This document shows, one piece after another, positions 6,701 to 41,306 of a stretch of DNA of 64,000 nucleotides. This stretch comes from Lepidodermella squamata (Eukaryota; Animalia; Gastrotricha). The notes beneath the pieces are model-generated. The model saw only the letters and a list, made by a program, of their open reading frames with translations, searched no databases and was not told where the DNA came from. A program made the position numbers and the translations under genes. The DNA is taken from contig JBLDXI010000001.1 of assembly GCA_047495785.1 (NCBI GenBank), positions 682,001 through 746,000 on the forward strand, read 5' to 3'. Positions within the stretch are counted from its first letter, which is position 1. Every line of letters starts with the position of its first letter.

Positions 6701-9700
6701 GGCGGGTGGGCATCATTCTCGGGGAAATCATCAAATTGCTGATTCTACACGGCGTATTGAGTCCACCACGAGTACCAGGAATTCGAATTTCCACACAGGC
6801 ATAGTACTTGTGAAGAGGTTTTGCAAGCATCTCGACAACAACGATGTCTGGCGCGACAGGGAAAGTTCGAACTGTCCGCAACCGGGTCGGAGACTGTCCG
6901 ATGCGAAGAACGAGTACGCTTGGTAACGAATCAGGACGATGTGATTCCAATTCGACGCAAATTGATTGTAACAAAACGCCAGGTTTGATAGATAGCTGAA
7001 TCCAATGAGGAGGATTTACGCCTGGTTGTGAGAACCAAGAAATCGGCGACCCTGGTTGCGCTTGTTTGAAAAGGTTGACATTCGAAGACGCTGCTACATG
7101 CGAAACACAGGCTGACCAAGTGTTACAGGGATTCGCTACTGCTGTTGAGCTCGAAGCTTTGAAAGTAGACGTTCCACTACGCTCGTCTCGCTTAGCGAAA
7201 ATAGGCCCGCGTGTCTTCACGAATGCAAAAAGACCGTGGACATGGCTGTTCTGCGACAAACGGCGCCGGCATGAGGCGCAAACGATGAAAAATTCCGGAG
7301 GTTTGCATTTCCGGCATCGATAATAAATAGTGTCAGATGAGACGTTGATATCATTCTCGCACTCTGAACAAATAACCATAGGTTCTGATGGAATAATTTC
7401 GAGCTCTTTGCGCAGCCCGGCCCAGCGATGTTGTTGCTGGAAGTTGACGTAGACAAGATCGTCCAACAAAGCGACGACAACACCGATCGAGCCATGAGTG
7501 ACTGAGCCCCATTTGTACCGTGGAACCGTCACAGAGTCGCGAACCTTGACTGAATCGCCAATTTCAATCTCACGCTTGGTTTCCCAAGGCCAGGAAACGA
7601 CTGACAAATCAGTCGAGCTAACCCATAGCCGCTGACCGCAAAGTCGCCAATAGACCAAGACATTTTTCGCTGACATGCCACCCTCAGCTTTATTGCTGCT
7701 GCGAGGTTCTTCCAACGAGCTACCAATCAAACGATTCAATGATCGGAACTGGGATGAAAATGAAGGCAGTCCAGCACGGGTGGTGGCCGCTTCAACCCCG
7801 ACTCGAAGGACGAATCCGGTCTCTCCAGCGATGACGCCGTCGATTCTTACTAGGCTCTTCACGATTTGACCAACGCTAACTTCTGAATTCGGAGTAAGTT
7901 CGCCCGCAACTTCAGCAGCCAAAACAGTTGGCGACCTAGAGGCTTGATCGCGGCGAACAGATCGGCCAAAAGCGGCAATAGGTGGCCTTAAACGGCTTCC
8001 TAGACCAGCCAAAGCCCCCTCGGCACGTTCCTCAGAACTGCTAGCTGCATTATCCTCACCCTCTTCGTTAGAAGTGGACGAAGAAGTCGCACCAAGCATG
8101 TTTAGTGACAATGTATCTTCTCCATCATCACCAACCAGGGTAGAGGATAGAAATCGACCAAGTGATCGGCGTAACAATGGCTGTCGGTCACGCCTATTTG
8201 CGCGGCGCGAGTTGTTCGAAGCTGCAGTGTTCGATTCTGCCGAGTCGTCGACTAACGGCGGGTTCTCGACCAGCCAATTCACGACAGCATCAAGACTCGG
8301 TGGGCGAGAATCCGCCTCAGGTAGTAGGGAAGCGTAAGCTTCGTATATATGAGATCGAGAGAATCCCATTTCGGTCAAACGCCTCACATCGCTGTCATCC
8401 TCGCCGATGGGCAGGCCAGGGGTCGGCTCCTCGTCCCAGGCAGTTGACGTGCCACCAGTTCCTGCGGCGATCAATTCGCCACATTCAATTGTTGTGACAG
8501 TGTCGTCTTCGCTCGTCGATAGATTCTCACCGTCCAGCTTGATTGAATGAGATTCCTCCTCGGAGTCGTCGATATTAGCGACACCGGATGCGGAATCGAA
8601 CCCACCACAAGCTTGGTCGAAGCCCGATGAAGCCGGATTGTTAGAGGACGTTTTCATGGAAGATTCAACCGATAGTGTTTGCAAAGACCCAGCTTCGTCA
8701 ATCGTCTCGATTTCTCCACCCGGGGTGCCGGATGGGTTGTGAACTAACGAGACTGATGATGAAGAGGGCGTCGAAGGGTAATGTCGGCAAACTTCGATAA
8801 GTGGCGTGAGCGCAGTTTGAATTGTCATTGGCGAATATTTCGGCCTGACATTCGTGCTTTTGCTAGCTGCTTTTACCAAGTGCACGAAATCGGCGACGTT
8901 TGTAAAATTCAACATTGAAGTCGACCTGCTACCAAGTGACGACGAAACGAATTGCATGAAAAGCTTGGCCGATTGGAATAGCATAGACTTCTTCGTGTTA
9001 TTCACAGCTGAGCTATCAACACCAGCTAGTAACAACTGCCGGTCAAGATAATCCAGAAGCGAAATATGCTTGAGAATCAGCGCGCTGATTGGTTCCTCCA
9101 AATTTTCATCGCCAGAATGCGTATGGACTAGTCGGAAAGGAAACAACGGCTTCAACTCGACCTTCGAAAGAGCTACATTCAAACTCTGAGGACCACTCGA
9201 ACGAGTCAGAACCAAAGCAGTAGCTTTTGGAACGATAAGTTGAATGTAACCAATACAGGGCGCCATAATCTCGGCCCCGCAGTAAGCCCGCCCCTCACAT
9301 TCGAGGCCCATCAGGGCGAGCAGTGGCAAAATTTCCAGAAATTCTTGCTCAGTGCTCTGCTTCGAATTTTTAGTCATCATAGATTCGAGCACGGTTGCGT
9401 ATGATACCATCGCAGTTTGAATCCGATGGTTGACGTTCTTCTGAACTTCATAGCAATTGATGTAGATTCGTCGAAGGCAATCGACCGCGTGAAGCATCAA
9501 AGTTTCAGGATAAGTTGCCGAATAAGGAACCTTCATATCATCGGTTCGGCTCAGCTCACTTGATGCAGTCAGAGAGGTGGTAAGGTATGCAGAAATCGAC
9601 GAGAAAAGCGACCATGCAACCTCGCCAAAACGTGTATCTTTACGCAACGTTTCAATATTTGAACGAAGCGAAAATAAACTTTTAACCACCACGAAAACGT

Positions 9701-12700
9701 GAATCGCAATGAAGAAATGCGGATGAGCGCGACATGCGGACTGCTCAATTTGTTTCAGCATTTTCACAAAAAGATTCAGCCAGTTCATGTCTTGTACCAT
9801 GGCTCGCGCGTAAATTGGATTTCCGGCTAGTTCGTGAAGTAGAGAAAAGCCATAGATGTCTCGGAAACAGACATCAGCCTCTGAAAGGGTGAGAGAAGCC
9901 ATCGTTTGCTCACCATCAGCCAGCTCATGCTGTTTCATCGACCAAAAGTGCTCATACAAATGCAACAGGAAGTCAAGAAATCGACGCGCGTTTGCATCTA
10001 ACGCAGAACCGCATTTCGCAACGCTTGATGATGAAATCAAATTTTGCAGAAATTTCTGGCCAGTCGATGTTAGCAACGAAATCAGCGGTATGTGGTGCTT
10101 CTTATCGCCGTGATCTCCCAACAAGTTTCCGTCAAAAACCGATTCAGCTCCACTTTCAATCGAATGAAACTCTTCATCGTCTTCTGGCTGATCGCCGTCA
10201 CTTGCGTTTCGCGCGTTTCTGTTACCCCCGTCGTCATTGTCAGACGCGCTGCCCATGTTATCAGTGGCTGAGTGATCATCTTGCCTAGCCAGACGAAGGT
10301 CGTACTTAGAATCACGTCCCATACGGTAATTATTCGTGATCCCATTCGGCCATTTAACCCGAACCCAGCCGTCTGCAACAGGTCTGAGGACAATACCGAC
10401 TGAACGGCCACCCTCAGCAACATCTTGATCACCCCAACACCAATGTGGGCCACGGACAACCTCGGAACCGGTTGTCAAACGTTTAGCCTCCTCATCCCAT
10501 CGAAAACGAGCTGATTTATCTCTCAACTTCCGCTCATAGATCAAACACTTCGGGTACGCAACCGTTTTCAGCCTCTCTCCGCCGTTTTGATCGACAGCGT
10601 TTGATAACACCCGTATCAGGCGAGCTAAGAAGCCCTGCATCAACAATAATGACGGCGATTCAGGACCCGAGAACTTGGTTGACAAGTACAATACAATCGG
10701 GCATAACAATGACAGCTGAAGATGGTCAGAGAAAAGCGGAGCAACCAAGCCCAGCGCGTCTACCAATTTGAGGGTGAATCGCTCCCAGGAGTCAACCAAG
10801 ATGTGCTCACTTTTGCGGCTCAAGATGTTTGAATATCGAGACAGTTTTGTCCTCGACGGTTCCGATTGTTGCAAGCTATTGATAGCCGCAAAAGAGAGAC
10901 CAGCCAAGAAAGAATCCAGCAAATGAGGAACGGCTTTGACATCTGTAATGCCAAGCTGCTCGAAATTCGGCAACGAAAATGCACCGAACACATCAGTCAA
11001 CATTTGCGTTGTTTCCGTTTGACACACGGCCAATTCGATATGCATTCTGAACCGCAATTTCAACTCGGTGATTTGTGAAATCTTTGCAAATTGAACAAAA
11101 CGAGTCAGCTTTGAACAAGCGACCAATCTGTCGCCGTCTAATAGGCCATAGCGCCACGTTTTGTACAAATTTCGGCAAATTGGATCACTTATCATCAAGA
11201 TAACGTCATTCCATTTCGCGAACGGATCTTGTTCGGTGTCCTTCTCTTTGCTGGCCACGTATTGAACAGCTCGTTTCCACCGATTTTTCTTCCGCAATTG
11301 CAACATGCGCTGGCAGATCTCAGAACTGAAATCGAAGGATTGATCGACAGAGTTCAGCAGAAAACGGAGAGCGAAAAACACAGGACTGCAGACTGACGAG
11401 TGGTCAACCGCAGGAGACACCTGGCTTTGAAATTGTTTGACAATGTGTTGCAAAATCGACGACACGGCGCGAAAAACATCCGAAACAATCGGCAATTTAA
11501 CGATTAAATCAGAACAATCGCCCGGCTTCATTAGAAAAGATTGAAGGGGCTCGATTAAATCCATGTGGCGAACAAATGCGGCTAATGAGTAACGCTTTAC
11601 TGCACGCAATGCCACGTTTTCATTAGCAGCAAGCTTGACAGCGGTTAAATTGTTGTTGGTCATATACAAGTCAAAAATCGCCAGTAATTTCTCGACTGAC
11701 TCAGCAAACGAAGCATGCGGGCGTTGACCTGATAGCGAAGAAACGAAATCGCCCACGGCCTGCAGCTGGGTTGTGTCGAAATCTGAGACTAGGGACGATC
11801 GGAAAATTCCAGAATGAACCAAATCGATCATGTCTTCTGGGAATTGAGAGACCGGTTCTTGCGCCAACACTTCCACGGAAAATAGTGAGATAGCGAACAA
11901 AACCGATTGAACAAGTTCGCGAAAGGGTGGTACATGGGGACCCTCGGCAAATGAAACCGGCGAGCTGTCGCCGTCAACTTCTTCCGCCATTCTACCCATA
12001 CCAAATCGAGTGATAAAGCATCGGATTTTCTGCTGAAGTTCACGAGATGGGCCGGTCCCAGTCATGAAAACAGGGGTCGCCTCTCGGCCTCGAATTGAAG
12101 ACAGGGCAACTTCTTTGTTCAAAAATTGCAAATCTTTAGCGGTAGCCTCGGAAATGTCTAATACGCAACCGTGGACGATAGTCATTGTATTTCGCATAGC
12201 ATTCGAGATCGAACCCAAGCTAAATCTTTGATGAAGCGTCCGCGCTGGTAGAGCAGACTGCCAGGACATGACGTAAGACTCGAGCCAATGCTCGAATCGA
12301 GCGAATGAGCCATCCATTTCAACGAGAGCCAGAGATATTGGCTGTAATGCACTGACAAGGAAAAGGCCAAGAGGCCGTCCGTTATCTGACCCGATGAAAT
12401 GATGCTTCGCATGTAAAAGAATTGCCATGAAGGCGTCGATAACTTCTGGCAGGCAAGTTGACATGATGCTGTCGCCGAAAAAACGCTGACAAGCGTGAAG
12501 CATGTACACTGGTGACATTTTGCCAATGCGAATAAGCGCTTGGAAAATTTCAGTGCATGATGAGCAGAAAAAGGTCATGAAGTCACGCGCGAGAGCGACT
12601 CCCCGGCAAATAGAGGTCGCTGGGCAGCCATCAGGCGACCCTGCGCACGAGCAAAACGCGATATGGGAGAAGAGGTGACGCATGAAATGCGAAACTAGCA

Positions 12701-15700
12701 GAGCGCTGTCATCTTTCTGCGATGCATCTGCATTGACATTTCGAAAGTCTTCGACTATTTTGTAAAAATTGTCAAACTCCATGCCGTTTTCAATTAGATT
12801 ACTAGCAAGGGCTAGAATGCGACGCCGGTCATTCAGCACGATTGTCGTAATAAGAAGTATCAGCTCATTCGGGCTGTCTTCCGCGAAAAAGTTCTTCTTA
12901 CGGCTTTCCTTATCGTTATCAAGCGATTTGCCCTTCTTGACATTGCTAGATGAGTCCGTGTTCGAAACTTCACCCGACATGAACGATTCCATTTCCAGCG
13001 AAGCGTTAATAGCCTCTGATTGTATTAAGCTGTTGGTGTATTTACCCAGATCGCCATTTCTGATGATGATTTCCGCAAGATTATGGAACAAAACCTTGGA
13101 GAGCGAAGTTCCACAGCCTTTGGTAAGTTTCAAAAGCAAATACATCCGATCTTCCGGCATCGCGTATAGCATTGGCCAACATTCGCTGATCAACAACTCG
13201 ACTGATTTTGATAGAACGGCCGTGTCTGGTGTAACATCGGCAAACGAGGCCGTGCAGAGTTTGAAAATGCAAGATTGAAATTTCAGCTTCTGCTCAGGAT
13301 TAAGCAGCGCGCGGCAAGAAGGAGCGGCGGAATGAGCGCGAAAAACGTCAATGACAAAAGCACACAAGTTAGACTCTTGTCGCTCAATTCCACGACAAAA
13401 CAACTCGAGCAGATTATCAATAGTTTTGCTCGTCGACGCAAAATTGTCAAAGCCTTGCTGAAAGCAGTTTGTCAGGGAGATGAAATTTTCCTGGCCGGGA
13501 TTTTGGCGGCGTATTGTCTTTTTCTCAGGTGTGATCAGAACAAAACCAGCCAATGGTGTACAAGCCGCCTTAACCTTTACAGACTCGTCAGACAGCGAGC
13601 AGTCTAGATTAGCCAAAATTCGAGGTTTGGTAGGGTCGTCCAAGAATGATGTCTCAGCATGGGCCGAAGACCTCGAGAAATCGCGGCCATACAACAAAAT
13701 TTTCCCAGATGTGGTAACAACTAGTAGCCGGTTGTTATTCTGCGACAAAGCTTTCACAGAGTCATTGGGGTTGAGAATATCGATTTCATGGGGCATTTGG
13801 TTATCGCCAAACACGCGGCCCCAAACTTCAAGCTTTCCGGCCTTGGTGACGGCAACCGTGAAATTCTCCCCCGCAAATACATTGACAATATTTTCGAGGG
13901 AAAGGATGCGCTGCGGGGCGAACGATGCACTGTGTCCCAGGCGCCAATAAGATCCGCCGCCCCAGGTGTAAACATGCCCTGAGTCAGTCACTGCCGCCGT
14001 ATAGCCGACAGTTGACGCGCTCAGCGAAACATCGACCCACTTTGAGCCTCGAATTGGGGCAATTTGAACAGGCATAGCTTCGTCCTGATGGGTACCAGTT
14101 CCCAATTGCCCATGCTGGTTTCTAAAAAAATTAACGAGACGTTGAATTCATCAGCATGAAAAATAGAAATATAACACAAACCTTCCCCAAATGTAAATGA
14201 AGCCATCACTGGACAGGGCAGCTTGATACATCAAACCAGCAGATATTTTGATGGCGAATATTTCAGGCAGGCTGACCAGTTCGACTTTGGGCGGTTCACG
14301 ATCGACAGCCGTTGCCTCCCAGAAAAACACCTGGCCATTGGAGGCCAAGGCGAGGCAGTTTGTGCTTGATGGACAAGCAGCGACGGCACTAAAAATAACG
14401 AAAAATTATTAAGAAGTTTCAGTCGAATCAGTCGAATTCGGTACATTATTTGGCTGTTTTGGTAGATGCACGTATCGCTCGAGCCGCCCGAGATCACAGT
14501 AGCCGCGATTTCAGGTGATAGGTCGCACATTGGCAGTTGGCACACGTGGCCATCTCGCATAAGAACAACAAGAAAGTATTGACTTGCCGTCATATCAACT
14601 ACATCCTCAGGTCTCGCACCGCCGAGGAGACCGCTCGGTAAATTAATAGTATGAGACCCAAATGAAATCAATTCAGAAATTCCCCAGCCTAGCATTTGCG
14701 TCTTTCCGATGATATTGCTGTCTCTCCCGGGTACCTCGGAAGTGGAAGGAGTTGACAACAGAGGTTGGACTAGGCAGTCTAGGGATGCCATGAGTAGCAT
14801 TGCAGACGTTTGCAGAGGGAAGTCTTCCTCGGATAATGATTCGAAAATTTCACTCTTTCTTATGGTTTCAGCGGCAGGCGATGCCGCTGTCAAATACTGC
14901 GGTTGAATTTGATTCACTAGTTTCAGAAGCGCTGGCTTAACCGGTGCAGTTTGAATACCAGAACTGTTATTGGCGAGTTCGAAAATCATTGAAACGACGT
15001 CGAGCAGGGACGTTAGACTGCCCTCGGCTATTGCAAAATACAGAAGTATGCATATAGCATATTGGCGATCAGCATCTGGGACAGCCGAAACGCCGGGAAG
15101 ACTGTTTTGTGCGACGTTTTTCAAAAATTCTCGCGCTCTCTTCAAAGTACTCGCGATTCCATGCGACATCGATTGCGAATGTAAGCTACCGGGCGGAAGC
15201 GAGCTAAGCGCTTCGACGCAATTCGCCAAAACGTCAGAGCAGACATCAATATTTGCTGGCGACGATCGCCAGCAGCTTTTCAGAAAAGAGACTGCGATTG
15301 TGAAGGCTGTTTGACAGCCGATGTCAGCAAGTGTTGGTGTAGGTTGGCTCATATTGAGCGTAAGAGGCTCATTTCGCTCTTTAACCGTCGAAAACGAGCT
15401 GTTGCTGTCATCTTTACTTGTTGCAAAGCTCGCATTCAAAACCGGAGTACTACTCGCAGAATGTTTTAAAGCTTTCCATATATTATTGAGCACACCGAGC
15501 CGAACTCGGGAGCTTTTCACAACTTGAGCGTTCAATAGAATAGAGGTTGAAGCAGTCACCATGGATTGGGTGACACTGCTGTTGGATAGAGCCGAGAGCA
15601 TCCAGAAATCGTTAACCTCAGGTTGTTGGTTGGATTTTCCAGAATTATTTACCACTCCGCCGAACAAAGCCGTTTTTCGCGCTGATTTTTGATTGAAAAC

Positions 15701-15971
15701 TATTTGAACAGTGAACATTACAAATTCATCTCAGTTGCATCATATAAAACTTACGCTTTGAAACCATTTGAACCAGATTCGTCATGTCCTCCGGTAAAGG
15801 AGTCGTTTCTTGCTGGTCATTTTTGTCCTGTTTTTGTTGTTGGTGTTTTGAGATCAAGAGTTGAGAGTAGACAAACTCCAGCGTCGAAAGCGACAACGGT
15901 TTCAGTTGCAGCGGAGCAACAACCTCATCGGACGAACTGCCCAGTATACTGGACACCAATTCGTGCATCAT
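744..15971 (-). CDS. HERC2: Giant HECT E3 ubiquitin ligase HERC2, ~4954 aa. Exons 15971-15755, 15681-14445, 14388-14182, 14121-6393, 6328-2566, 2514-1125, 1065-744
   Basis: HERC2 domain order: N-terminal '[15 protein letters not shown]', degenerate RCC1-like domain, cytochrome-b5-like segment, MIB/HERC2 ([21 protein letters not shown]), UBA-like (LTEMGF), CPH ([16 protein letters not shown]), ZZ zinc finger, DOC/APC10, two RCC1-like propellers, HECT with catalytic Cys ([17 protein letters not shown]). All six introns are GT-AG, 51-73 nt, frame-preserving. Start Met (MMHE) is inferred. Confidence 0.96.
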
Positions 15972-16201
15972 TTCTTCGTAAATAATGTCAAATTGGCATC
16001 TAAACAAAATTTGAATATATCTGTAACAACCAACTTCAATTTTGGTGAAAATCTCAGAGAGTTGAAAGCAACGGCAGCGGCAATCGCATTGCACCAATGA
16101 TGAATTTAAACAAAAAACAGGAACTAAACACACAACAATACAGTTGTTAAGCTAAACATACAAGACTAAAATGCTCTTGAAAGGCAATTATACTGAAAAC
16201 G

Positions 16202-18224
16202 TTAAAAGCCGTCGGCAAACGATTTCTTCCGGAAGTCAGAATTAGCAAGAATAGTGCCATTTTGTAATACTTGAATAGCCTGAGCAACAGACATAATACT
16301 GTCTTTAAATTTGTACTCAGTTTGATTAACATGGCCGCGTGCAAAAAGAGAGTCAAGGATAACTTTAGGCATTTGCGGCTCGTAATAAAGCTTCTCCGGA
16401 ATGAGTTGGTGATGCAGCCTGGTCGCATCGATTGCTTGCTTTGGGTTCTCTTGGAACCAAATAACTCGGGTGGCAACGTAGGCAGTACCGGATGTAATAC
16501 GAGATCCACCGGCGGCCCCGACAATAAGACTAGCATAGTAAGTATTAGGCTCAGTGGAGTTCACAACCTGTCGCAGGAATATCGACGGACACATTGAAGA
16601 CTGCGGCCGTTTACCAGGTTTTATAAAATTTTGCGGACTTGGCGGCAAATTGAAATAATTGGTCTTGTTTGGCGTCGAAAAATCATCCATTTCGTCATTA
16701 AAAATAATACCAGTCCGTTTTCCAATAATACCACTTCCGAAGTAAACATTGATAGTGGAAGTTACAGAAACCGCGTTGCCTTCCACGTCAATAACCGAAA
16801 TATGGGAAGTGCCGTGATTGCTGGCGTAAGTAGGGTCAGGTTTGTAGAACGCGGTCGGGTGAGTAAATTCATCGGAAATTCGCGATCGAAGAGCATCAGC
16901 GTATGGCTGTGATGTCAAATTCGCGATAAGTTCAGCCATGCCGGGGACAAAACTTTCATCGCCCAGCAATAATCGCCTGCCGTATCCGAACTTCAAGGCT
17001 TCGACAAATCGATGGTAAGTCGTCGTATTCTGGCTATCTTCTTTTGTTAAATTGTATCCCTAAATAAAGAAATTCGATAATACAAGAAATCGATCGCAGA
17101 AATTGACTCTTACCGAGAGGATATTCATAACTAACGCTAAAATTGCACCCGAACCAGGCGGAGGGACACTTAGCATTCTATACTGATTTTGAATAACCGT
17201 TTCAAGAGGCTTTCTCCAAATGACTTGATACGAGGCAAAATCGGAGGCACTGATCGGCGAGCCGATATCGTTTAAATCAGAAATTATGTCCTTTGCAATC
17301 GAGCCATTATAGAATGAGGCAGCGCCTTCTTTTGCGATGCGGGATAAAGTGGCAGCAAGAGCAGGGCATTTTATAACATCGCCTTGTCGCAGAGGTTTGC
17401 CCGAGGTGACGTTGGTAAGAAAATTTCTGCAAATAATCCAGAATTACATGAATATTAATCGCAAAAAGAATAATAGCTCACATTGTGTTCGCGTAAGGCC
17501 TTTTATCATCAGCAGCGTCAATTTTGCCCAGAATTTGGTCAATCGCCGACTCAAGGACTTCCGATATCTCAATTCCTTTGATACATAAATCAATCGTGGG
17601 CTGGAACAGGGTTTCCCAGGGAAGTTTTCCGAAACGCTGATGCGCCGCCCAGTAGCCGGCAACCTCGCTCGGGACGGCGATTGACAGAGGTCCCATAACC
17701 GATGAAATGTTGGCGAACATGTTTTCAGTCGCGAAAAGCGGAGCGATTTCTCTAGCGTCCAGTGCGTACGCGGTTTGTGTTTTCTGATGCCAGATTGTCA
17801 TGAGAAAACCACCACCGATGCCGGCATTGTGCATGTTGAAAGTAGAGCCGGAGCATACCATCGCAGCAATCGCCGCGTCAACCGCCGATCCGCCCATCGC
17901 CAGCATTTTTGTTCCGATTTGCGAACAAGGACCCGCATCTGCGGCAACAGATGCGAAGCGATAAACGCCGAGTGGAGAACTTGAAACCGGGAATACAATT
18001 CCATTGGATGCCGGTGCTGGTGCAGAATTTTGAGTCACATACATAACAATAACGACAGGAATACCGATAAGGAGGACTAACACTGCGATTGCTATCACAA
18101 GCTTCCAGTTCGGCTTAGCGTTTTTCCGACTAGAAAAATAAAATGTCCCCTTTTGGGGCGAATTCGAGTGGCCATTGGTCAGGTCGAGCCGATCGGTCTC
18201 CGTAGCCACAGCCGTCTGATCCAT
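16202..18224 (-). CDS. GGT: Gamma-glutamyltranspeptidase copy D (canonical, 637 aa, type II membrane). Exons 18224-17482, 17426-17114, 17059-16202
   Basis: N-terminal TM helix; GGSAVDAAIA; GIGGG; DARE; catalytic Thr in HGTSHISVID; TSTIN; NDEMDDF; PGKRPQSSM; GAAGGSRI; C-terminal SDFRK..DGF. Confidence 0.95.
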
Positions 18225-18553
18225 GTCCAAAGTTATATTAAATCCCTAGAATCAAAATAGCCACATGAAACACAATGAGGTTCACTTGCATTGATTGCCA
18301 GACTTTCCAGCAAAAATATGCTGGACATTAACAAAAGCCGTCGAAAAATAAAATAAACAAATAGATTCGGTGAAACAGATATCACAAATACACATAAGTT
18401 TGATAAAATGCTTCCAATTGATTCGGTAGACAACAAAGATTGTTAAATGCACAACGCATATAGTGAGATAGATCACGATAAAAATATTATGATTGAGACA
18501 CAGGCAGCATTGATCGTTATGAAGCAGTCTTATTATTTGATTCCCATATAATA

Positions 18554-20954
18554 TCAAAAACCATCAGCATACAAGCCCGGCTTTCGTTGGTCAGCAAAAC
18601 TTATGATTTTTCCATCATCGAGTCGCTGTATGCCCTGCGCAACAGTGCGTTGAAAGTAAAGGCTCTCAGTTAAATTAACATGGCCGTGGCTGCGCAAGAA
18701 ATCCAACAGCCCCTCCGGAACGCCTTTTTCGTACAAAATCCTCTCGGGAGAGCGTTGCGGGTGAAGACGCGGAGCTTCGATTGCCTATAGAACGCAATTG
18801 CTGACTCAATAATTTACTGTTTACAGCGCACCTAACGTACCTGCTTGATATTCTCCCCCATCAGTAAGACTCGCGCGGCTATCGAAGCGACCGCGGATGT
18901 GATGCGCGAGCCGCCTGCCGCGCCTATGACCATGCGCACGCTTTTGTCGCCGGCGCTTGAATTATTGATGAATATCGCAGGACACATGGCAGACAACGGA
19001 CGCTTTCCAGGCCTGTACAAATGAGTCGACAATAAAACACTTAAATTCAACAAAACCGCATCACTTTTAACTAGAAATGGCGACATGAGACAATAATGCT
19101 ATCTTGATATCAACAAAAGGGCGCGGCTGCTAAAGGCGCTCTTATCAAGCCACGGAGGTTTTGAGGTCGAAGAGATAACCCGCGATGAACTTTGATTCAT
19201 CCATATTACCGTCCGTGGGATAAGAACTTGGTTGCCCTCAATTTTCCTAGTTTTCTAAAAAAAGACATCACCGAAAAACTCACTGAATGAGGTTAGCCAT
19301 ATTAACAGGTCCTCCACTTCCGACACTCGACGGCGACGTAAAATCATCAAGTTCGTTGTTGAAAAATATTCCTGTTCGTTTACCCATAATGCCACTACCA
19401 AATCTAAGAAGAAAATGCATCGAAAATCAATGGTTGTCCGAAACTATAGCGCAGAATTTTTACATCATATTAATTGTTGAAGTGACCGATACAGCGGATC
19501 CATCGGCAGCAAGAACTGAAACATGCGCGGTGCCATAGTCTTTGGGTTTGTCAAAAACAGCAGGGTCATAGAAGGAGATCGGATGAGTTGATGAGTCATT
19601 GATCCACATTCGAGTTTTCTTGCCAATATCAGCTGAGGTCAATTCGGCTAACAATCGCTTGAGTGTGTCCTTGTCAGGCATAAAATCTTCGTCACCCATC
19701 AGCAGCTTCTTGCCGTTAGCAAATTTTACAGCCTCAATAATTCGATGAAAAGTGAGAGGCTGTTCGCCGTCAGATCGGCGGAAATCGAAGGCTTGTAATA
19801 TGTTCAAAACATAGCTAAGGAGAGCCCCAGCGCCTGGTGGGCGAGTTGTATACATTCTGAGGCCGCTTTTCAAATCATTCACCAGAGGAGCCCGCCAGAT
19901 CGGCTTGTAAGACGCCAAATCTTCCTTCGTTATCGGCGCGCCGAACTCTTGCAAATCAGCTACAATGTCGTCAGCTGAAAAAATATTTCTTAAAAAATTG
20001 TGTCTGTATTAAGAAGCGTAATTTACCCAAAGTTCCGTTATAAAAGTCTGAACTGCCATTAACAGCTATTCGCTCCAGCGTTTTACCAAGTTCAGGGCAG
20101 TATATTGTTTCCCCAGCCTGATAAAGGAGCCCAGTTTTCGGGTTGATAATATAACTTCGCAATCGATCGTAGAATGAGTCGGTATATCTGGCTAGGAATT
20201 GCCTTGACATTCCACCGATGCTTTCAGCAAACGCCGGCGTCGCTTTGAATCCATTGATACACATATCTATCGAAGGCTTGAACAATGAGTACCAAGACAA
20301 TCGGCCGAAACGTTTATGAGCCGCAAATAGACCAGCCACTTCGCCCGGAACGCCCACTGAAAAAGGTCCGCGGGTCAGTAGGCCCCCTTTTGAGGTCATC
20401 AATTCGATAGAGAAGCCCAGTGGAGCGGTTTCTCTTGCATCCAATGTGTAGGCCTGTTGAGAGGGAGCATCCCATATCACCATGTGAAAACCACCGCCGA
20501 TTCCAGCACTTTGCGGGTGGATAACAAAGCCGCAGATCAATGAAGAAATCGCGGCGTCAAGGGCAGAGCCTCCCCTAGCTAGAGTTGCTGTGCCGATTTC
20601 CGAACAGATTCCCCCATCAGCAGCAACTGAGGCAAAACGATATTTGACTGTTTCTGGCGACGTTGATTTGATGAGCAGAGGTGCTTTAGGTTTCGGAGCT
20701 GTTAAATACGAAATTAGCAGAGCCAGACCGAATATTATGGCCAAAAGGATAAGCCCGATCAGTGAGCGATAATCCGGCTTGTACCACGGCGTTTTATAGT
20801 GAACTGCCGCTTGCTTTTGAATACCCACAAAAGGCCGAGGGGATGAACCCTGCTCCGGCACGTGCAGGCGACTTCTATCAACACTTCCAGCAGTTCCACT
20901 CGCCCTAACTAGTAAATCGACGATGTCATCGTTCCGTTCAATGGCTTCAGCCAT
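18554..20954 (-). CDS. GGT: Gamma-glutamyltranspeptidase copy C (653 aa). Exons 20954-20027, 19974-19464, 19403-19284, 19012-18841, 18784-18554
   Basis: TM helix, DARETAP, YGTAHVSV (Thr kept), NNELDDF, PGKRPLSAM, GAAGGSRI, ADQRK..DGF. Four frame-preserving GT-AG introns. Confidence 0.93.
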
Positions 20955-21136
20955 AAATTGGCCTTAATAATAGTTAAGACCTATATTTGACAAAGAGAAA
21001 GATAGAAAGCTCTGCTAAAATTATTGAGCATAGAGTTTTGTAAAAAAAAACGGAGCTGAAAACGGAGACTAGGAGCAACTAGTAGGAAAGACGTGTTGAT
21101 TGGCTAGAAAATTAAAATAAAAAACTAAATGAACAG

Positions 21137-22329
21137 TTAAAATCCGTCAGGGCTGCCAGTGGACTTCCGGAAGTCGCATACAGCTAACAACGAACGATTT
21201 TCAAGACGCTGAATCGCTTGAACAACAGATCGACCGCGCCAGTCAATGATCGTTAAATTTTGCTGCTGAAACTGTGTATGGGCTCGAAGCCATCCCAACA
21301 ACCAGTCTGTTACTCCCCGCTCATAAAATAGGGTGCCCACGTGGAAATGAAGCCTGGCTTTATCGACAGCCTGTTTGAAAATATCATACAGTGTATTTAA
21401 AAATCAAAAGAAGTAAATACGAAATTTACCTCATTGAGTTTCTCTCCGAGCCATAAGTCAACGCTGAGTGGAGTTTCGTCAAGCACAGCCTGATATGACC
21501 TCAAGTCTTCCTCATTGATTGGAACGCCTAAATCTGCAAAATCTTGCAAGATCTGCTCGGCAATACTTCCACGGTAAAATTCTGGCGCACCGTTAGCAGC
21601 GATTTCCCTGAAAGTTGCGGCGAGTTGTTTACAAAAAAATTTATCTCTAGCTTTGTAATATCCATTAGATTGTCTATTTGTGAGCAACTCTTTTAAAGGA
21701 GTGAATTCAGAAGCATTCGTGGCGAAATTTTTGAAGAAATCGACGCCTTCCTCCAGTACCGAGCTGACCTCGAAGCCATTTTCGCACAAATCGATTGAAG
21801 GAGTAAACAAATCAGTCCAATTTAAACGACCGTACTTTCTGTGAGCTTCCCAGATTGCTGCCAGTGTTCCGGGAACACCGATTGAAAATGGTCCCATTTT
21901 AAGGTCGTTCGGATGATTCAATAAATCGGAGTTTGATCCACGTGGAGCTACGCTTTGTCCGTCAATTGAAACGGCTTTCTTAAGTTTATTGTCCCAGATG
22001 ATCATGAAGAGACCACCTCCAACGCCAGCGCTGTGCATGTTCAACACGCTCGAGCATAGCAGAGCAGCGATTCCCGCATCAACAGCCGAGCCGTTTCTCC
22101 GCAGCATATCGGTACCAATTTGTGAACATAAGGCCGAATCTGCAGCAACGGCAGCAGTCTTATACAGTCCGTGAGGCGATTGAGGCAGATATTCTGAAAC
22201 CGGCGAATATTCGGGTATCACGACGTAAAGGCTGAAAATTGCACCAGCAACAAAACATCCGAGAAAAAGCGTTAGGGCGGATGCTTGTTTCGCAAATCGA
22301 TTACCCGCAGTTTGACTTGAATCCGGCAT
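21137..22329 (-). CDS. GGT-like copy B, internally deleted (377 aa, catalytic core absent). Exons 22329-21430, 21370-21137
   Basis: Large-subunit motifs (GSAVDAGIA, GVGGG, VPGT, FYRG) run via 'TPLSVD/LWLGEKLNE|AVDKARLH' straight into the small-subunit C-terminus. No T-S/A-H catalytic motif, TIN, PGKRP or GG motif. ORF and 59-nt intron are intact. Confidence 0.85.
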
Positions 22330-22549
22330 AGCATAATACTTTAACGCCTCTAAACGATAAAAAATTAAGATGGACTAGTTATGGCGGTGTATAAATAAAA
22401 TCATCAAGCTTTCGTTGGAAGAAGCGGTTGAACAACAATTGCGAATCACAGTCGAAGCATTATTGCATTTTGCACCAACAAACGAATGTAAAAGACAAAA
22501 ATTAATCACCAAACAAAAGCTTCAGTGAGAGCATTGTATCTAGAGAATC

Positions 22550-24501
22550 TCAATAGCCAGCTGTGAAGCCACCTCCTTTACGAAAATCGGCTATGGCAAG
22601 TAAAGTGCCGTTATCAAGTCGTTGAATAGCCTGAGATATCGACGAGCGTGGTGTTGTATAAGCTTTTTGCGCAATGTGACCCTTTTGTTTCAGATATTCT
22701 AACATCCATTTTGGCCATGATGGTTCATAGTAGAGAATATCAGGAATTAAGGTCCCGCTAAATCTGAATGCATCGACAGCTTGTTTCACTGTTTCTTTGA
22801 ACCAAAGTGTTCGGTAGGCTACGTATGGCACTGTCGATACGATTCTATTACCACCACTTGCGCCAACAACGAGTCGAACAACGTCGTTTTCGACGAAAAG
22901 CATCGGCGAAATAGTGGTCATCGGTCTTTTACCCGGGCTTATAAAATTGTGAGGTGGCAATGGCAAAGCATCTGACGACGTTTTGTTTATAAAGAAATTC
23001 GACATCCCGTTATTGAAAATAATTCCAGTCCGTTTGCCCATGACAAAGGATCCAAAACTAGACGGCAAAATAACATAGTCTCCTAATCAAAAAAGGTAAC
23101 TCCAAAAACTCACTGTCCATTTATCGTAGATGTGAGCGAAACCGCGTTTCCTAGTTCGTCAATCACAGAAATATGAGAAGTACTGTGATGGATGTTTTTC
23201 TCCTCAAATAATGGTGGAGTTCCGTAGGTTCCATAATCCTCGATTGGAAGAACATAGGAATCATTTATTTTCTGCCGCACGTAGTTTCCCATTTCTGATG
23301 ACGTTATATTGGCAAGACGTTCGTCCAATTCAGTCTCGTTCAAGAAAGAAATATCTCCGAAATAAGACCACTGACCCCAAGCAAATTTCAACGCTTCGAG
23401 GTAACGATGGTAATTCAAAGGATCTTGACTAGATTTTGAGTCCCAATTATATCCGGCAAGAATATTGAGCAGAAAAGCTCCTGCAGCTCCACTGGAAGAC
23501 GGTTTCGGTGTCATCAGTTTCAGATTACCATTTACTCTCATTTCCACTGGCCTTCGGGAATGAACAACGTAAGAACTCAGGTCCGCTTTTGTAATTTTGA
23601 CGCCGACCTCCTCAAGATCGCTAATAATCAATTCAGCCAATTCTCCAGAATAAAAATCCTCCGGGCCATTATTAGCAATCATTTCCAGGGTTTTGGCCAA
23701 CTGCGGGCATTTGATATATTCGCCCTCCTTGTACCAAGTTCCGGTTTCCGGATTGGTAAGAAATTCGACTAAAATAGCCATTTCTGGCTGTTTAGTGGCA
23801 TTAGCCTTCTTCGCTACGAAAGCGATTCCCTCAATCAAAGCTGGCCCGGCTGAAAATCCATTTTTGCATATCTCGATAGACGGTGAAAATAAATCTCTCC
23901 AAGGAAGTTTTCCATATAGATTATGTAGCTCCCTGTAACCAGCTATCTCGCCAGGGACAAGAACAGATAAGGCCCCTAGCTCCAGAGCATTCGGGTTTTT
24001 GATAAATAAATCGTTCGACATAGCGCTGGGTGAAACTCCGTAAGCGTCGAAAGTGGTCGCGTTTGAGGAGGCATTGTTCCAAATAACGGCGAATACGCCC
24101 CCTCCTATTCCGAGATTGTGCATACTGATAATTCCGTTGCAAATCATAGCCGCAATCGCGGCGTCCACAGCTGATCCTCCTCGTCGAAGCATCTCGTTGC
24201 CAATAATTGAGCAGTTCCCGTTATCGCACGCAACAGCCGCTTTTTCATAAACACCAAGAGGTGAGTTCGAAACAGGAAAATTGATGCCTGGAAAATCAGG
24301 CTGTTTCGACGTCGAGCCGGTTAAGGTGACAATGAGAGCGATAGCAGAGACTATTATAATTAAAATAGCAATCGATGCAACGACAATAAGCCGAGGATAT
24401 TTATGCCAAATCATGTTTGAACGCCGGTACTTAGTCTCATCGAAACCAGGCTCATTCACGGCCATAAATTGTTCGCCGTCATCTTCCGACATTTTCAGCA
24501 T
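22550..24501 (-). CDS. GGT-like copy A (631 aa) with altered gamma-glutamyl pocket. Exons 24501-23114, 23057-22550
   Basis: TM helix, GGSAVDAAIA, HSTSHISVID (Thr kept), TSTIN, GASGG; but DAYG, NNGMSNF and PGKRPMTT replace DARE, NDEMDDF and PGKRPxSS. Confidence 0.92.
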
Positions 24502-24912: not shown

Positions 24913-27900
24913 TCAAGTCGAACCACTCGATCCGTCATTGCAGAGAAGTTCAATTTCGCGCAGAAGAGCCGCGTGCCGTTCAACCGAGCAACGACTGGCG
25001 CACATCGATGCCTGTTTTCCGAGGCGGTGGTCGGCTAGCAAGCGCGCCAAAGCCGCGGTGGCAACTTCTAAAATTGGGTCTTTTATTCTTGTGTCATCAG
25101 TCGATGCGCTGTCATCATGCGGCTTTCTCTCAGCAGGCTCGGGACTGCTAGGGGTGGAATGCGAGTTGGCGAATGCGTCAAGACCGAAACGTTCGACAAT
25201 GGCTTCAGCTAAACGACCAGCCATGTCAGTCCATCTGAATTGAAGCAATAATTCAACAGCTGATCGATACTGCCCAACCGAAATCAGCAGCAGCACTGCA
25301 AACATGCGTTGCGACGTTGTTTGTGATATAGTGGACGAGGAAGCAACCAGATGTTGAACGAATTTTTTCACCACATCAGTCTGGTGGTGACCGGGTGTTA
25401 GCGTGCACTTCGCTAATCTGATCGAGTCGAGCCAAAATCCGGACGATTGCAAGTAGCGGCAGGCGTCGTAATGAAGCCCGACTAGACATAGCAGATGAAT
25501 ACCGTCAAAAATGTGCCCGTCTGCCAGTAAATTGGTCGCGACCAATTTCAGCGTAGCCGTTCTCGTGTTGTTCGCAGCCGATGCGTCAATAAGACACGCC
25601 CTATATGCAACGCAAAAAAGTCGGATTATTAATAATTTTTGACACGCGCAAGGTAATTAGGGCAAATGTAGGTGCGGAAAGAATGAAAACACCCTGCACT
25701 AAATGGCATGAGATTTAGTGGAGCGAGACCATTGGCAACATTATGGCGTTTTGTAGAATTATACTTCTGTGTGTCGCAATTGGCTTAATTTTGGCCGCAG
25801 AACTATCTATCAAGGAGTCTCGGGAATTGAGCGAATTGGCCAGGGCCCAGATCGACGGTTACATCATACAGAGAACCAGAAATCGGTAATAAAATATCCT
25901 AACCAACTCAGCATCAACTACTTTTTAGTCTCAGGCGACAAGCCAGCAGACCGCTGCCGTGTCACGTCGAGTATGTTACAATCAAGCTAAGCGAGTTGGA
26001 CGTGTTTCATAACCGGAAGCCCATCCCTGCTGAATTGCGAGTACCCTACTGCGCCGGGGCATGTTTACCAGGTAATAGCGTTAACTATATCTCGTATCAG
26101 ATCAGCTTCCATTTGTTTATTGTAACATTATTTTTGGCTGCAGCTTACGCTTTTGATCAACGATCGCATATTATACTACGCTTAGCCGTCGGTAATGGAG
26201 TTGGATGTGTACCTAACAGCGATACACTTCCGCCTCCTCTAAACCAAACCATTTTCAGCTTCAATTCCCTGAGCAGCTCGTTCGACAAGATTGTTATCGA
26301 CAAGTTGCTCATTACTAGCTGCAAATGTGTGGGCTAAAATAATACTGATCACGCTTATGAAGAGGTGGAGGTGGAAAATAAAACCGAATTTGTCTATGCC
26401 TTGGCTATTATTGTTCTATTCAATATCTGAGAGATAACTTACTTTAGCCAATCTTGAATAAATTTAGGGTCAGAAGGCTGAGTTGCCAATAGGGCCGATG
26501 CAGCAGATTCTTGATCGCCATAAGATCCCAAAACATCCGCCAGTCTTCGGCGATGCTGCGGGGTTTCAGCGGTAGAAATTTGTCGACGCAAGCAGTCCAA
26601 AGCATGATTCTTGAAGTCTGAATCATTGCAAGCAAGGCCCATTGACGAGGGTAGGGAGCCTTGCTTGTCTCCCAAATAATATTTCACGGCTAACCAAAAT
26701 CTGTACTCTAAGTCAGCACCCATAATTCGAGCAACCAAAGCGCATCGCTCGGCTTTGTTTTCAGTTTTTTGCAAAAACGGCCAATAAGGCACTAGCCAGG
26801 AAGCAGGCCAGTCGTTGGCGTTTTCATGCTCACTTTGAGCCATCAAGCGATGGGTTGTTGCTAATTTACCTCCATCAGCGACCAAGAAAGGCGAAAGAAG
26901 GTCAGGGCGGCGGATTCGGGCCGAAACGGGGCAGTTATCGAATTGAAAGTCAAAATTTAAAATTCGAATAGCACCAGAAGTCATGGCAAGAACCGGAATT
27001 CCTGGAGCCCAGAAATCGGCATCGATTGCTCGTGAAACAAGACCCCCAGTAGTCGAGGCTTCTGAACGCACTTTCAACGAATTAGTTATTTCGCCGGATT
27101 CAGCATTACACAAATCGCAAGATCCATCCGAATACAACGCTAGAAACATGTAATTTCGGCGACCCGGCGAGAAGACTAGACGCCGAATGGAATTGCCGGA
27201 ATATTTGTTCGTCGAAATGGAAATATAGCGCTTCTCGATTATGTTTTCAACAATTATTTTTCCGTCAAACTCAGCCGCCAAGATGTAGCGACCTTTCCAA
27301 GCCAACGCAGTGACAGCTGAGGAAACATGGACGTCGAAATTAAGTGACTTCTCTTGAGCACTTTTTCCGCTGAATACAAAGCGCAGCAAACGCCCGGATA
27401 CGCTTATGATGATCAGCTCATCGAAATGAGCCAATTGAGGCGGAGGTGCGAGGCTAGGGTCTGACATCGAGGGTGTCGGAGATGATCTAGGATCATCGTT
27501 ATCACTGGCAGAGCGATTTACTCGTCGGCGCGCCCATTGAGCAGATGAAGCCTGAACTGCAAGGGATCTAACAACGTGATGTGTATCCAAGTCCCAGATA
27601 TCAACAGCCCCGGATCCGTAAATGACAACTGCTAAATAGCCTGATGGTGAGCAGTTAATGCTAACAATCGGGCTGCCATCACTCCGAGAACTCTTCAACT
27701 GGTTAACTTTTCCTGATGGCAAAGAAATGACGTATAACTCGTTTTTGACGGTTGAAGTGTTTGTTCCCGGGTCGATAGATTGCGTCACCAAGCTAGGCCC
27801 TCCAATAACTCCGGCGCAAACAAGCCGCTTCGAACCGGCCCAGTCGATTGCAGTGACTGGAAGAGGCGAAACAGCGAAATCATTTTCAAGGCTACCGCTA

Positions 27901-29334
27901 GCTAAGTTTACAATCTGGACGCTTCCATTTTGACAACCAATAGCAACTAGGGGGCGATAGCCAGCCAAATCCCCAGATGCAAACCCAGGCACGATTCGCA
28001 TGCAGCAGATACCGCCACTGTGACCCGAATATAAGCCACTCAGAGCAAATCCAAGGTTGGTCGAATTGATGCGGTTTTGCAAACGCCATAAAAATAAACG
28101 GCCAGAACTCATCAAAACTGCATACTGTCTTTCCCCGACTGGCTCGGGGGCGGCGGCCAAGGGTTTAGCCTGTCTCGGCAACCTCAAGGCATCAGTTTGT
28201 GCAGCCAATACGTACCGAATATTGGAATAACTTTGCATAGTAATCATCTGTGAGGACTGCGACGTGCCGTCTTCGCTCGGGGTTACAGCTTGGCTGTTGT
28301 CTCCAACGACTGCGTTGATTTGCCTGAAGCTAAGTTGACCAGAATCGTGCACTGCAATGAATTCGTTTGCGTAAGTACTGAAGAAAACTTGGAAGAACGT
28401 TGATGCGATCTTTTCCAGCGAAATGCTGCAAACGCTGATGCCAATGTCAATGTCGAATATGAAAATATCGCGAGGGAAGACGAATATTGCGTGATCGCGA
28501 TAATGAGGGTGAAACGAAAACTGAATGCAGTCTTTCAGTGAGCACTGCTCCAAGTCAGCCGACTGTAAGCGTTCGTCTTTGGCAGGAATTAAATACTTTG
28601 GACGAAGAATTTCGCCCCTCTTCGAGTAAACAAAATAAGTAGAGCCAGAATCCTTGGGCTCGTTTTCCACGTCCAAGTTGAAGTAAATAAATAGCGAAGT
28701 AGACCCAATAACTAAAGAGAAAAAATATTCAGAAAATTAGGAGAAATAATAATATGATGCTTACCTGCCAGTTGCAGAGGATTAAGCGGATTTGGTGTGA
28801 CTGATTGAAGAACATCGTTGAATGGCTGTGTCCACAAAGGAGATGCTGTTCTGTCTTTGTAAGACCAGGCAGAAATAACATTGGTGTGAACAACCAATAA
28901 AATATCGTTCTGAGCTGACGGAGTAAGCCAGTGCAGGTCCTTCACACATTTTTTGGCGTCCTGAAAAGAAGCCAACATAGCCCCTTTTACCGCGTCCCAT
29001 ACGACTACAAGACCAGAGTTGTCCGCCGACGCTAGCCACAGATGAGGACGGTCGGATGTATTGTAAGTAACAGACGGTTGCTTCCATACTGTCTTTACGA
29101 CGACAGCTGAATGATTTTCCAAAGATTGCACCAGCTTTACTGATTGCACGTGAACGATATTGACGATGTTCTGACACCCAAAAGCAATAAATCCATGACT
29201 ACCCCTGTATTTCAATTTACCAAGAAAAGTGAATGGAAAAGTGGCAATTTCTCAAATAATTACCATGACAGCGAATTTTTATTGCCAGCTGTACAGTTGC
29301 TGCAAATCGACTTGGGGCTCAATATTGTTTCCAT
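24913..29334 (-). CDS. WDR11: WD repeat protein 11 (1155 aa). Exons 29334-29264, 29204-28765, 28711-26443, 25600-24913
   Basis: N-terminus 'NKNSLSWGSHGFIAFGC', LASAD, FHPHYRD, 'FSPGRRN', C-terminal 'LKACL..LKLVATNLLADG..GIHLLCLVGLHYDACRYLQS', all typical of WDR11. Confidence 0.93.
25743..26337 (+). CDS. Nested secreted TGF-beta/GDNF-superfamily cystine-knot ligand (159 aa). Exons 25743-25885, 25929-26071, 26144-26337
   Basis: Spliced product: MAFCRIILLCVAIGLILAA (signal) ..RTRNRLRR (furin site) QASRPLPCHVEYVTIKLSEL..PYCAGAC..SHIILRL..GCVP..ITSCKCVG*. GT-AG introns of 43 and 72 nt. AATAAA at 26377-26382. Confidence 0.88.
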
Positions 29335-29528: not shown

Positions 29529-30549
29529 CTAACAGCACTTTGAATAGGAGAATGTCCGATCGTTACTGGTATTTTCAGTAGTGTTTTGCTCAACTCTGAT
29601 GGCTGAGCTTGACGTCTGTCTCGTTGTTTGTGACATAATAGTTGGATTTCGCAACAATGCGAAAGCTATGTCAGAAAACATTTTCTCAACGTTTTCACCA
29701 GACTTAGCAGAGCACTCAATGAACGGAATACCAAACTCGAGTGATAGCTGCTTTCCGCGTTCCTTAGTTATTTGCCTCTGCTCTTCCATGTCGATTTTAT
29801 TGCCAACTAAAACACGCTCTACCCCATCTTTCGCGTTTTGCAGAACTTGCCTCATCCAGTTGATGACATTTTCAAAGGACTCTCTGCGGGTGATGTCATA
29901 AACCAAAAGAATTCCGTGCGCATTACGATAGTAAGAAACAGTGATCGTATGAAATCTCTCCTGTCCAGCGGTATCCCTAAAATATATAAATTCTTAGAAC
30001 CCAATATTCAATAGAGAACCTGGCTCAAGCAGTAGCGCAACGGCTATACTTCTAACAAATAACCTAAGCTGATAATCACAATAGGCAAGCATAATAAGAT
30101 GTATAAATCGAGACCCGCATTCCAAGACGATCTTTGCCTCTCACCTCGCTTTCATTTCAAATTGAAATAAATAATTTTCGTGGATATCTAGCTTGCGATA
30201 ATGCAATATTAACCATTCCACCGAAAAGACTAACTTTATCGAAGCAGCAAGCAGCAGAAAAGTTCAATATTATGTGCAAGCCAGTGCACTATCAGCAAAC
30301 CATATTTGAAGGCGGATTTTCTTGCCCCCAATATCAACTGTTTTGATTTTGAAATCTATACCTACAATGAAAACCACCCGAGACTTAATAAAATTACGAA
30401 GTTCCAGGCATTAACGACGCACCGATTGTAGCGATGAATGACTGTCTAAAGGAATCATCGCAAAATCGAAATATGAGACAGGTCTTCCCAACACCTGAGT
30501 CGCCAATTAACAGCAGTTTGAACAAATGGTCGTAAGGTTTTTTTGCCAT
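29529..30549 (-). CDS. RAB10: Rab GTPase, Rab10-like (Rab8/10 group, 211 aa). Exons 30549-30423, 30361-30301, 29976-29529
   Basis: [57 protein letters not shown]-terminal SKCC. RFHTIT and SKCC are Rab10 signatures. Confidence 0.88.
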
Positions 30550-38590: not shown

Positions 38591-39757
38591 TGAAGAACCA
38601 CGTGTGCTCTTTCATAAATCAATGTCTCGTCTTTTCAGCAATAAATATCAGGGTGTTTTATGCTTGTTTGCCGCGCCCACGCCGCTCGTTTTTTTGATAC
38701 GATAAAGCGGGAATTTTTGATAATAAAACAAACATCGACTTATCGCGCTTGTGTTTTTGTTTTTTGTTGATATGAGCGACATGATATGCAGGCCGAGAAA
38801 AGTTACCAATTTGAATTCAAAATTGTATCTGAAAAAGCACCGTCTGAAGCATCTTTATTGTAGCGCACAGCCCCTGTATTATTTAACAGCTTGAAAGAGT
38901 TGGTTCGTTTTTTGGCGTGCGTCTCATTATACTATCATGTCCTTTCAACCAATTCAATGCGTCTGATATGCCGCTGAGTCATACGTCAACATTTGAACAC
39001 TTGCCTACACTACTGAACTGGTTGTCATAATAAAGGTGATGTTAGTCTGCCATGCAACAGATCAACAGGTTAATCCACGCGAACACTATAAGGTGAAAGC
39101 GTTATAGTTGTCTGTAACCTCTTCGTCACGGAGAGTTATTACACTAAAGAGAAAATGACACGCAAGACGTCCAAAGCCGGCGATAATTGCCGCGGCTACT
39201 CCGGCAGCTGGAACTCAGCAAAAAGCTAGAACTTTGAAACACGGGGAAAATAAAAAGACAATGAATAATTATATTTTTAGATTTTTTATTTCACTTTTCC
39301 TCATCACATGCAACCCAAATACTTCACCATCACATAATTTCGAATAACACCTGCGCATCACTCTTACAGAGCAGAAGGAATAGACGCAAAAAGCAGCGAA
39401 TGTTGACTTTCGAAGTCTAATGAAAGCACTGTAGGAGCATGAACGACAGGCGCACGCGACCAACAATCCGAGACGAGAGCGAGATGAAAATATTCACCGA
39501 ATTTTTAATGCTATTACACTTTATACGAGCACAATTTTTGTCTAGATAGAGAGATACATCTCTTTTCGCCTAAAAAACTTTCTGTGACACCAATTGGCGG
39601 AGAAAAAGCGGCCACGACGGTATTCCGCCTTGGCGCGTTCCAAACATCCGCTCAATTTAAATATAATTATTTTAAAGTTTCTCAAGTGAAGTAATCGAGC
39701 CATACGACCGCCATTTACACCCACTACAGCGCCATCACTGAACTTGCCATGCTGCAT

Positions 39758-41306
<1,549 letters not shown>

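Follow-up and report, generated by a model that had tools for sequence, protein, structure and literature searches.

The gene described here lies on the plus strand at positions 25743-26337 of a 64,000-nucleotide stretch of Lepidodermella squamata DNA (contig JBLDXI010000001.1, positions 682,001 to 746,000); the whole stretch is called the window, and positions given without a contig name refer to it. Judged from the sequence, it is a real protein-coding gene that runs antisense to WDR11 and fits completely within the third intron of that host, as it is intact and kept in the same intron of a second, distant species. The encoded product most likely represents a lineage-restricted branch of the TGF-beta superfamily that has diverged strongly, and its affinity appears to lie with the BMP/GDF rather than the GDNF type. 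It is probably a divergent, TGF-beta-like, six-cysteine secreted protein having a minimal pro-segment and lacking the inter-chain cysteine. The link to TGF-beta appears real but thin, and membership of the superfamily rests on half of the domain.

An earlier, sequence-only reading of the window had described a complete three-exon gene antisense to its host in WDR11 intron 3, followed downstream by an AATAAA signal. Three exons and two GT-AG introns were read directly from the sequence, with consistent splice sites and phases, and the signal was located as well. The features of the nested gene are as follows (nt, nucleotides; GC, guanine plus cytosine content).

25743-25885, plus strand: nested exon 1, opening with ATG and ending in phase 2, with GT at 25886
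25886-25928, plus strand: nested intron 1, 43 nt, GT..AG, GC 0.30
25929-26071, plus strand: nested exon 2, with the R-L-R-R site, C1, the Y-C-A-G-A-C motif and finger 1, ending in phase 1
26072-26143, plus strand: nested intron 2, 72 nt, GT..AG, GC 0.33
26144-26337, plus strand: nested exon 3, with a putative wrist-helix segment, G-C-V-P, the N-Q-T sequon, C-K-C-V-G and the stop codon TAA
26377-26382, plus strand: poly(A) signal AATAAA, 40 nt 3' of the stop codon and still within the host intron

The exon-by-exon count gave a product of 159 codons (47+1+47+1+63), of which 108 residues follow R-L-R-R, in accordance with the lengths of product and mature part given earlier. Exon 1 contains the ATG, a hydrophobic segment resembling a signal peptide (mean Kyte-Doolittle value of 3.4 for residues 6-17) and most of the pro-segment of about 33 residues. 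The first arginine of the R-L-R-R site is encoded by the split codon, L-R-R occupies 25930-25938, and the predicted mature part begins at 25939. The cysteine codons are found at 25960 (C1), 26050 (C2) and 26062 (C3) in exon 2 and at 26206 (C4), 26320 (C5) and 26326 (C6) in exon 3, and the window product has no further cysteines. The GC of both nested introns (0.30 and 0.33) is low against that of the exons, which is 0.44-0.55. Intron 2 is in frame and free of stop codons, so that the 113-codon open reading frame (ORF) 25996-26337 of the ORF list reads through it; this fragment is all that the ORF track displayed, as had been noticed before. Retention of intron 2 would add 24 largely hydrophobic residues directly after the CxGxC motif.

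The counterpart of the gene was found in a second species, which is represented by three metagenome contigs (L001-L003) of one species encoding the WDR11 relative P0001. The contigs carry a called ORF of 96 residues, weakly matched by TGF_beta, which runs opposite to WDR11 and is flanked by its propeller ORF and its TPR ORF. Reading of the DNA revealed an antisense three-exon gene in the same WDR11 intron, the place in relatives that the sequence-only reading had suggested checking. Its features are listed below.

L002 12944-12832: exon 1 of the relative, with ATG and a hydrophobic segment, ending in phase 2
Between exons 1 and 2: intron 1 of the relative, 61 nt, in the same phase as window intron 1
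L002 12770-12634: exon 2 of the relative, with K-K-R, C1 and Y-C-H-G-P-C, ending in phase 1
Between exons 2 and 3: intron 2 of the relative, 51 nt, identical in position and phase to window intron 2, with an in-frame stop
L002 12582-12377: exon 3 of the relative, with G-C-T-P, ending in C-K-C-V-G and then the stop codon, identical to the window
L002 12348-12343: poly(A) signal ATTAAA
L002 12325-13106: host intron of the relative, 782 nt

Exon 2 ends in phase 1, two residues past C3, in both species. The in-frame stop in intron 2 of the relative means that splicing is required there and that retention of intron 2 is not a conserved option. In the nested region the three contigs differ by one intron base and one in-frame 6-nt indel of exon 3. 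This indel (L002 12499-12504 compared with L001) falls in a short D-L repeat and is the sole coding difference among the contigs. A short upstream ORF, a feature of the window as well, terminates at the nested start codon of the relative. No paralogue of the nested gene was found in the window or in the retrieved loci.

The conservation of the gene was analysed at the level of exons and of the complete host introns. Searching with the window exons by tblastn gave 33% identity for exon 2 (E 2e-8) and 36-37% identity for exon 3 (E 3e-9 to 1e-8), and the ends of the alignments coincide with the ends of the exons. No sequence conservation of exon 1 between the two species was detected by tblastn; the last ten residues at its 3' end show weak similarity only (p about 0.04), and its position and phase are common to both species. 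Comparison of the two complete host introns by tblastx gave an E-value of 4e-15 for the proposed sense frame and of at least 0.078 for any other frame or strand. Nucleotide-level alignment of these introns was restricted to the stretches encoding YCxGxC and CKCVG-stop. All six cysteines are kept in both species and none is extra. They stand at residues 11, 41 and 45 of exon 2 and 21, 59 and 61 of exon 3 in the window, and at residues 9, 39 and 43 of exon 2 and 22, 63 and 65 of exon 3 in the relative, so that the distance from C1 to C2 is 30 residues in both. The framework C..YCxGxC..GC[VT]P..CKC, which had been read from the window, is thus kept in both species.

The two species share the order Ras-WDR11-gamma-glutamyl transpeptidase. 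WDR11 is 61-66% identical between them and the neighbouring proteins overall just 43-66%, which places the species far apart. Since the nested gene is intact in two such distant species, a chance ORF or a non-coding constraint is very unlikely. The idea of a non-functional element, whether a decaying or unexpressed ORF or a stretch conserved through constraint on the WDR11 intron rather than on a protein, draws on the number of species, which is two only, and on window intron 2, which happens to be in frame and stop-free. It is contradicted by conservation that is confined to the exons, to one frame and to one strand. The frame, the splice sites and the six cysteines are intact in both species though WDR11 itself is just about 60% identical, and the sole exon variant within the relative is the in-frame 6-nt indel. 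There is accordingly a very slim chance that the element is without function.

The same comparison bears on the start of the gene. A signal peptide followed by a short pro-region ending in a multibasic site had been proposed, and the hydrophobic exon 1 and R-L-R-R agree with it; a similar layout was seen in the relative. The distance from the predicted signal peptide to the basic site is about 33 residues in the window and 26 in the relative. The short pro-segment could in principle be an artefact of the gene model, in which case the ATG at 25743 would be a false start and a long prodomain would come from an additional 5' exon lying beyond the host intron; the lack of sequence conservation in exon 1 would fit such a situation. 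However, both species have an ATG-initiated hydrophobic exon that ends in phase 2 with a GT donor 43-61 nt before exon 2, so the short pro-segment is backed by independent signal-like first exons in the same phase. Upstream of the host intron lies the host's own coding exon on the opposite strand and then the gamma-glutamyl transpeptidase genes, and no significant sense-strand tblastx block was found in the intron beyond exons 2 and 3. A missing upstream exon is hence considered highly improbable.

The family of the product was investigated by profile searches, for which single exons or the genomic frame 25930-26334 (intron 2 read through) were used. The curated gathering score of Pfam TGF_beta (PF00019) is 27 bits. 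Exon 2 of the relative alone scored 26.8-26.9 bits against this profile (E 9e-6, profile positions 2-35), which is 0.2 bits under the cut-off and comes from a third of the domain. The match is not confined to the cysteines, as it covers hydrophobic positions, I-I-x-P and Y-C-x-G-x-C. The genomic frame of the window scored 15.0 bits (E 0.043), and the single window exons, exon 1 included, gave no Pfam match. The six-cysteine order C1-x(28-30)-C2-x-G-x-C3...C4...C5-x-C6 near the C-terminus was found in both species. Homology of the product to the TGF-beta superfamily is likely. It is based on the profile match of the relative, which extends to the window by clear orthology, and also on the cysteine framework, G-C-[VT]-P and a C-x-C near the C-terminus.

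The profile results also allow a different type of knot to be weighed, in which the product would be a secreted cystine-knot protein outside TGF-beta, either lineage-specific or DAN/CTCK/glycoprotein-hormone-like, sharing the generic CxGxC/CxC ring only. Every TGF_beta score lies under the curated cut-off, exon 3 has no detectable similarity to anything, and the prodomain that defines TGF-beta precursors is missing, all of which would suit such a protein. Yet TGF_beta was the sole cystine-knot Pfam family that responded; DAN, CTCK, glycoprotein hormone, PDGF/VEGF and NGF gave no match at E up to 10 with any piece of either species. The finger 1 of the relative falls on TGF_beta positions 2-35 beyond the cysteines alone, and a BMP-like pattern is seen in the 30-residue spacing between C1 and C2 and in the G-C-[VT]-P motif. 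A knot outside TGF-beta is for these reasons unlikely. The TGF-beta link of the sequence-only reading is supported as far as the responding family is concerned, and it is weakened by scores under the cut-off and by the unmatched exon 3.

The comparison with known structures yielded leads rather than significant matches. Exon 2 of the relative retrieved BMP6 chains only from the PDB, and the two-species exon-2 profile retrieved BMP3 first. Both alignments are in register from C1 to CxGxC (query positions 8-45) and span finger 1 of the nested product. With the exon-3 profile, as with the whole two-species profile, nothing was retrieved from the PDB. Neurturin is also among the PDB entries retrieved with the exon-2 profile, and it is here that a GDNF-family-type neurotrophic ligand has to be considered. 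The product would then be an invertebrate counterpart of GDNF-type ligands, signalling through Ret and a GFR-alpha-like co-receptor, and the short pro-segment would be a family hallmark. The precursors of GDNF, neurturin, artemin and persephin are small, their pro-segment is short and they carry a site of the RXXR type; these ligands belong to Pfam PF00019, and the precursors of persephin and neurturin are of the 159-codon size class. The nested precursor of about 159 codons, with its short pro-segment and basic site, resembles them in these respects. We know of no ligand identified outside vertebrates for a Ret and GFR-like pair. Neurturin, however, matches the seven-residue YCxGxC only (query 39-45, E 1.8-2.5, no stretch passing alone), compared with BMP3 and BMP6, which align over the whole of finger 1, all of these PDB matches being non-significant. 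GDNF-family ligands have seven cysteines including the inter-chain one, whereas the nested product has six, with glycine at the inter-chain position in both species. Likeness to the GDNF family is thus limited to the YCxGxC motif, and no Ret or GFR-alpha gene was seen among the large ORFs of the window. The GDNF/Ret branch that the sequence-only reading had entertained is consequently not upheld, and a ligand of this type is quite improbable.

The reading preferred here, a divergent member of the TGF-beta superfamily, shares with BMP/GDF-type ligands the Y-C-x-G-x-C motif, a C-x-C near the C-terminus and a basic site a few residues before C1. It differs from them in the pro-segment, which is of about 26-33 residues as against hundreds, in the absence of the conserved finger-1 tryptophans and in a shorter stretch between C3 and C4 (23 residues in the window). 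Its finger 2, unlike theirs, is not recognised by any profile, its scores are below cut-off and it is known from two species only.

Several observations weigh against membership of the superfamily or against parts of the gene model, and they are brought together here. No piece of either species reaches the 27-bit TGF_beta cut-off. Exon 3, which would form the second finger, has no Pfam match in either species and no PDB match, and the matches of exon 2 to BMP6 and BMP3 are non-significant (E 0.4-1.4). For the AlphaFold2 model the frame 25930-26334 was used, intron 2 included, and the alignment had two rows; the model has a predicted local distance difference test score (pLDDT) of 43 and a predicted template modelling score of 0.32. 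The input included 24 intron-encoded residues and one partial homologue, P0004; just the finger-1 hairpin was drawn, and the intron-encoded stretch appeared as a helix. A pLDDT of 43 means that the model says nothing about the fold. The cystine-knot fold had been claimed too strongly from the sequence, considering this value and an exon 3 without detectable family similarity. Neither the search of 5.8 billion clustered proteins nor the full HMMER run on 1.84 billion representatives yielded a further homologue, both being wide searches of a kind that would miss relatives as distant as ordinary BMPs, and the family hence rests on two species. The basic site of the relative is dibasic and lacks the P4 arginine of the furin consensus. 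The pro-segment of about 30 residues may be read either as the point of interest of this protein or as a sign that it does not belong to the TGF-beta family. In the window, ATG codons are also present upstream at 25605 and 25708, opening the short ORFs 25605-25718 and 25708-25788, the latter overlapping the nested start. Consequently, the 5' untranslated region of the nested gene would be very short, or its translation would be influenced by the upstream ORFs.

In the word-seeded search the 135-residue genomic frame retrieved nothing, and the two-species profile retrieved only P0004, which is the relative's own ORF. The sole HMMER matches, P0002 and P0003, were rejected as repeat-protein artefacts, their scores being summed over 5 and 14 short repeats; among the Pfam families listed for P0003 is one named after a herpesvirus. 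No further relatives were found through the host gene in scans of JGI metagenomes and GTDB genomes.

The pro-segment and the inter-chain position are the features in which the product departs most visibly from TGF-beta precursors. The prodomains of TGF-beta ligands usually run to hundreds of residues; they act as folding chaperones and keep latency under control, and a long prodomain is normally thought to be needed for folding. This hallmark is clearly absent from the nested-gene product. The basic site lies 7 residues before C1 in both species and reads R-L-R-R in the window and E-K-K-R in the relative. A possible likeness of the pro-segment to the first, amphipathic helix of TGF-beta prodomains was examined and rejected as inconsistent, the hydrophobic moment being 0.71 in the window and only 0.38 in the relative. 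The N-Q-T sequon that had been pointed out is present in the window; its position is not kept, as the relative has D-Q-T there and carries N-W-T elsewhere.

The C-C pair of the family is replaced by G-C in both species, with glycine at the position of the inter-chain cysteine, which bears out the earlier observation that the dimer-linking cysteine is missing. Ligands without the inter-chain cysteine have been documented and include GDF9, BMP15, GDF3 and C. elegans TIG-2 and TIG-3 (PMC11210861). The nested product has in common with these the six-cysteine knot pattern in which the first cysteine of the C-C pair is replaced, here by glycine. Since accepted members also lack this cysteine (PMC11210861), the G-C pair does not exclude the product from TGF-beta, and for the same reason the feature is not new in itself.

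The following course can be proposed for the product. The gene would encode a 159-codon secreted precursor comprising a signal peptide, a pro-segment of about 26-33 residues, a multibasic site of the convertase type and some 108 residues of mature protein. The signal peptide would be removed and the precursor cut at the basic site, and three intra-chain disulfides would form the knot. In view of the glycine at the inter-chain position, the ligand may be a non-covalent homodimer or heterodimer, or a monomer, as is described for GDF9, BMP15 and TIG-2/TIG-3. It may engage TGF-beta-type receptors or modulate other ligands.

The host gene on the minus strand was identified as WDR11, for which P0001 was the only relative retrieved. 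P0001 carries the Pfam WDR11 propeller families, and the adjoining downstream ORF has the TPR_WDR11 domain. The 745-codon window ORF 26439-28676 (minus strand) is 61-62% identical to P0001. The host gene was mapped as follows.

24913-29334, minus strand: WDR11 as mapped, with the start codon at 29334
29334-29263, minus strand: WDR11 exon 1
29262-29205, minus strand: WDR11 intron 1, 58 nt
29204-28765, minus strand: WDR11 exon 2
28764-28712, minus strand: WDR11 intron 2, 53 nt
28711-26443, minus strand: WDR11 exon 3
26442-25601, minus strand: WDR11 intron 3, 842 nt, donor AAA|gtaagt and acceptor catatag|G, housing the whole nested unit
From 25600, minus strand: next WDR11 exon, TPR_WDR11 part

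The third intron had been described as 842 nt long against about 55 nt for the others, and introns 1 and 2 (58 and 53 nt) are in agreement with this. It is a general arrangement in animal genomes that larger genes house antisense genes within their introns. The present case conforms to it, as the nested coding sequence and the AATAAA lie wholly inside WDR11 intron 3 on the opposite strand, in one host intron far longer than its neighbours. It is distinguished by a nesting that is kept in two species whose host proteins are 61-66% identical and whose other short host introns are not shared. The relative lacks WDR11 introns 1 and 2 and has in their stead a single 936-codon ORF (L002 9560-12370) that extends up to the intron of the nested gene; the only WDR11 intron common to both species is the one that houses it.

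The surrounding window contains, besides these genes, HERC2 with giant exons, a tandem array of gamma-glutamyl transpeptidase genes, Fritz/WDPCP, a RING protein and a DMXL/Rav1-type gene. HERC2 was located at 1121-14105 (minus strand) as two giant adjoining ORFs of 1740 and 2584 codons, a few bases apart. This organisation in two giant ORFs indicates an intron-poor genome, and the source genome is a compact, intron-poor animal genome. The gamma-glutamyl transpeptidase copies stand in tandem directly downstream of WDR11, at about 16200-24500 (minus strand) in the window and at 14276-22370 (plus strand) on L002. A Ras-like gene lies upstream of WDR11 (29532-29912 in the window). Long ORFs overlapping on opposite strands were observed at 39749-40693 (plus strand, 314 codons) and 39758-40561 (minus strand, 267 codons), and the plus-strand one has no Pfam match.

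Annotation can easily overlook such nested genes, as their exons are each shorter than 65 codons and their sequence is below profile cut-offs. The present case indicates that a small signalling gene can persist in a host intron over a long evolutionary distance while other introns of the host vary between species. If the product is a true member, a conserved ligand with about 30 pro-residues and without an inter-chain disulfide would represent the TGF-beta family in a natural, minimal form. If a ligand can indeed fold and be secreted with a pro-peptide this short (about 30 residues), this would bear on the view that a long prodomain is needed, and the nested ligand would then be a compact subject for asking what the TGF-beta prodomain is needed for.

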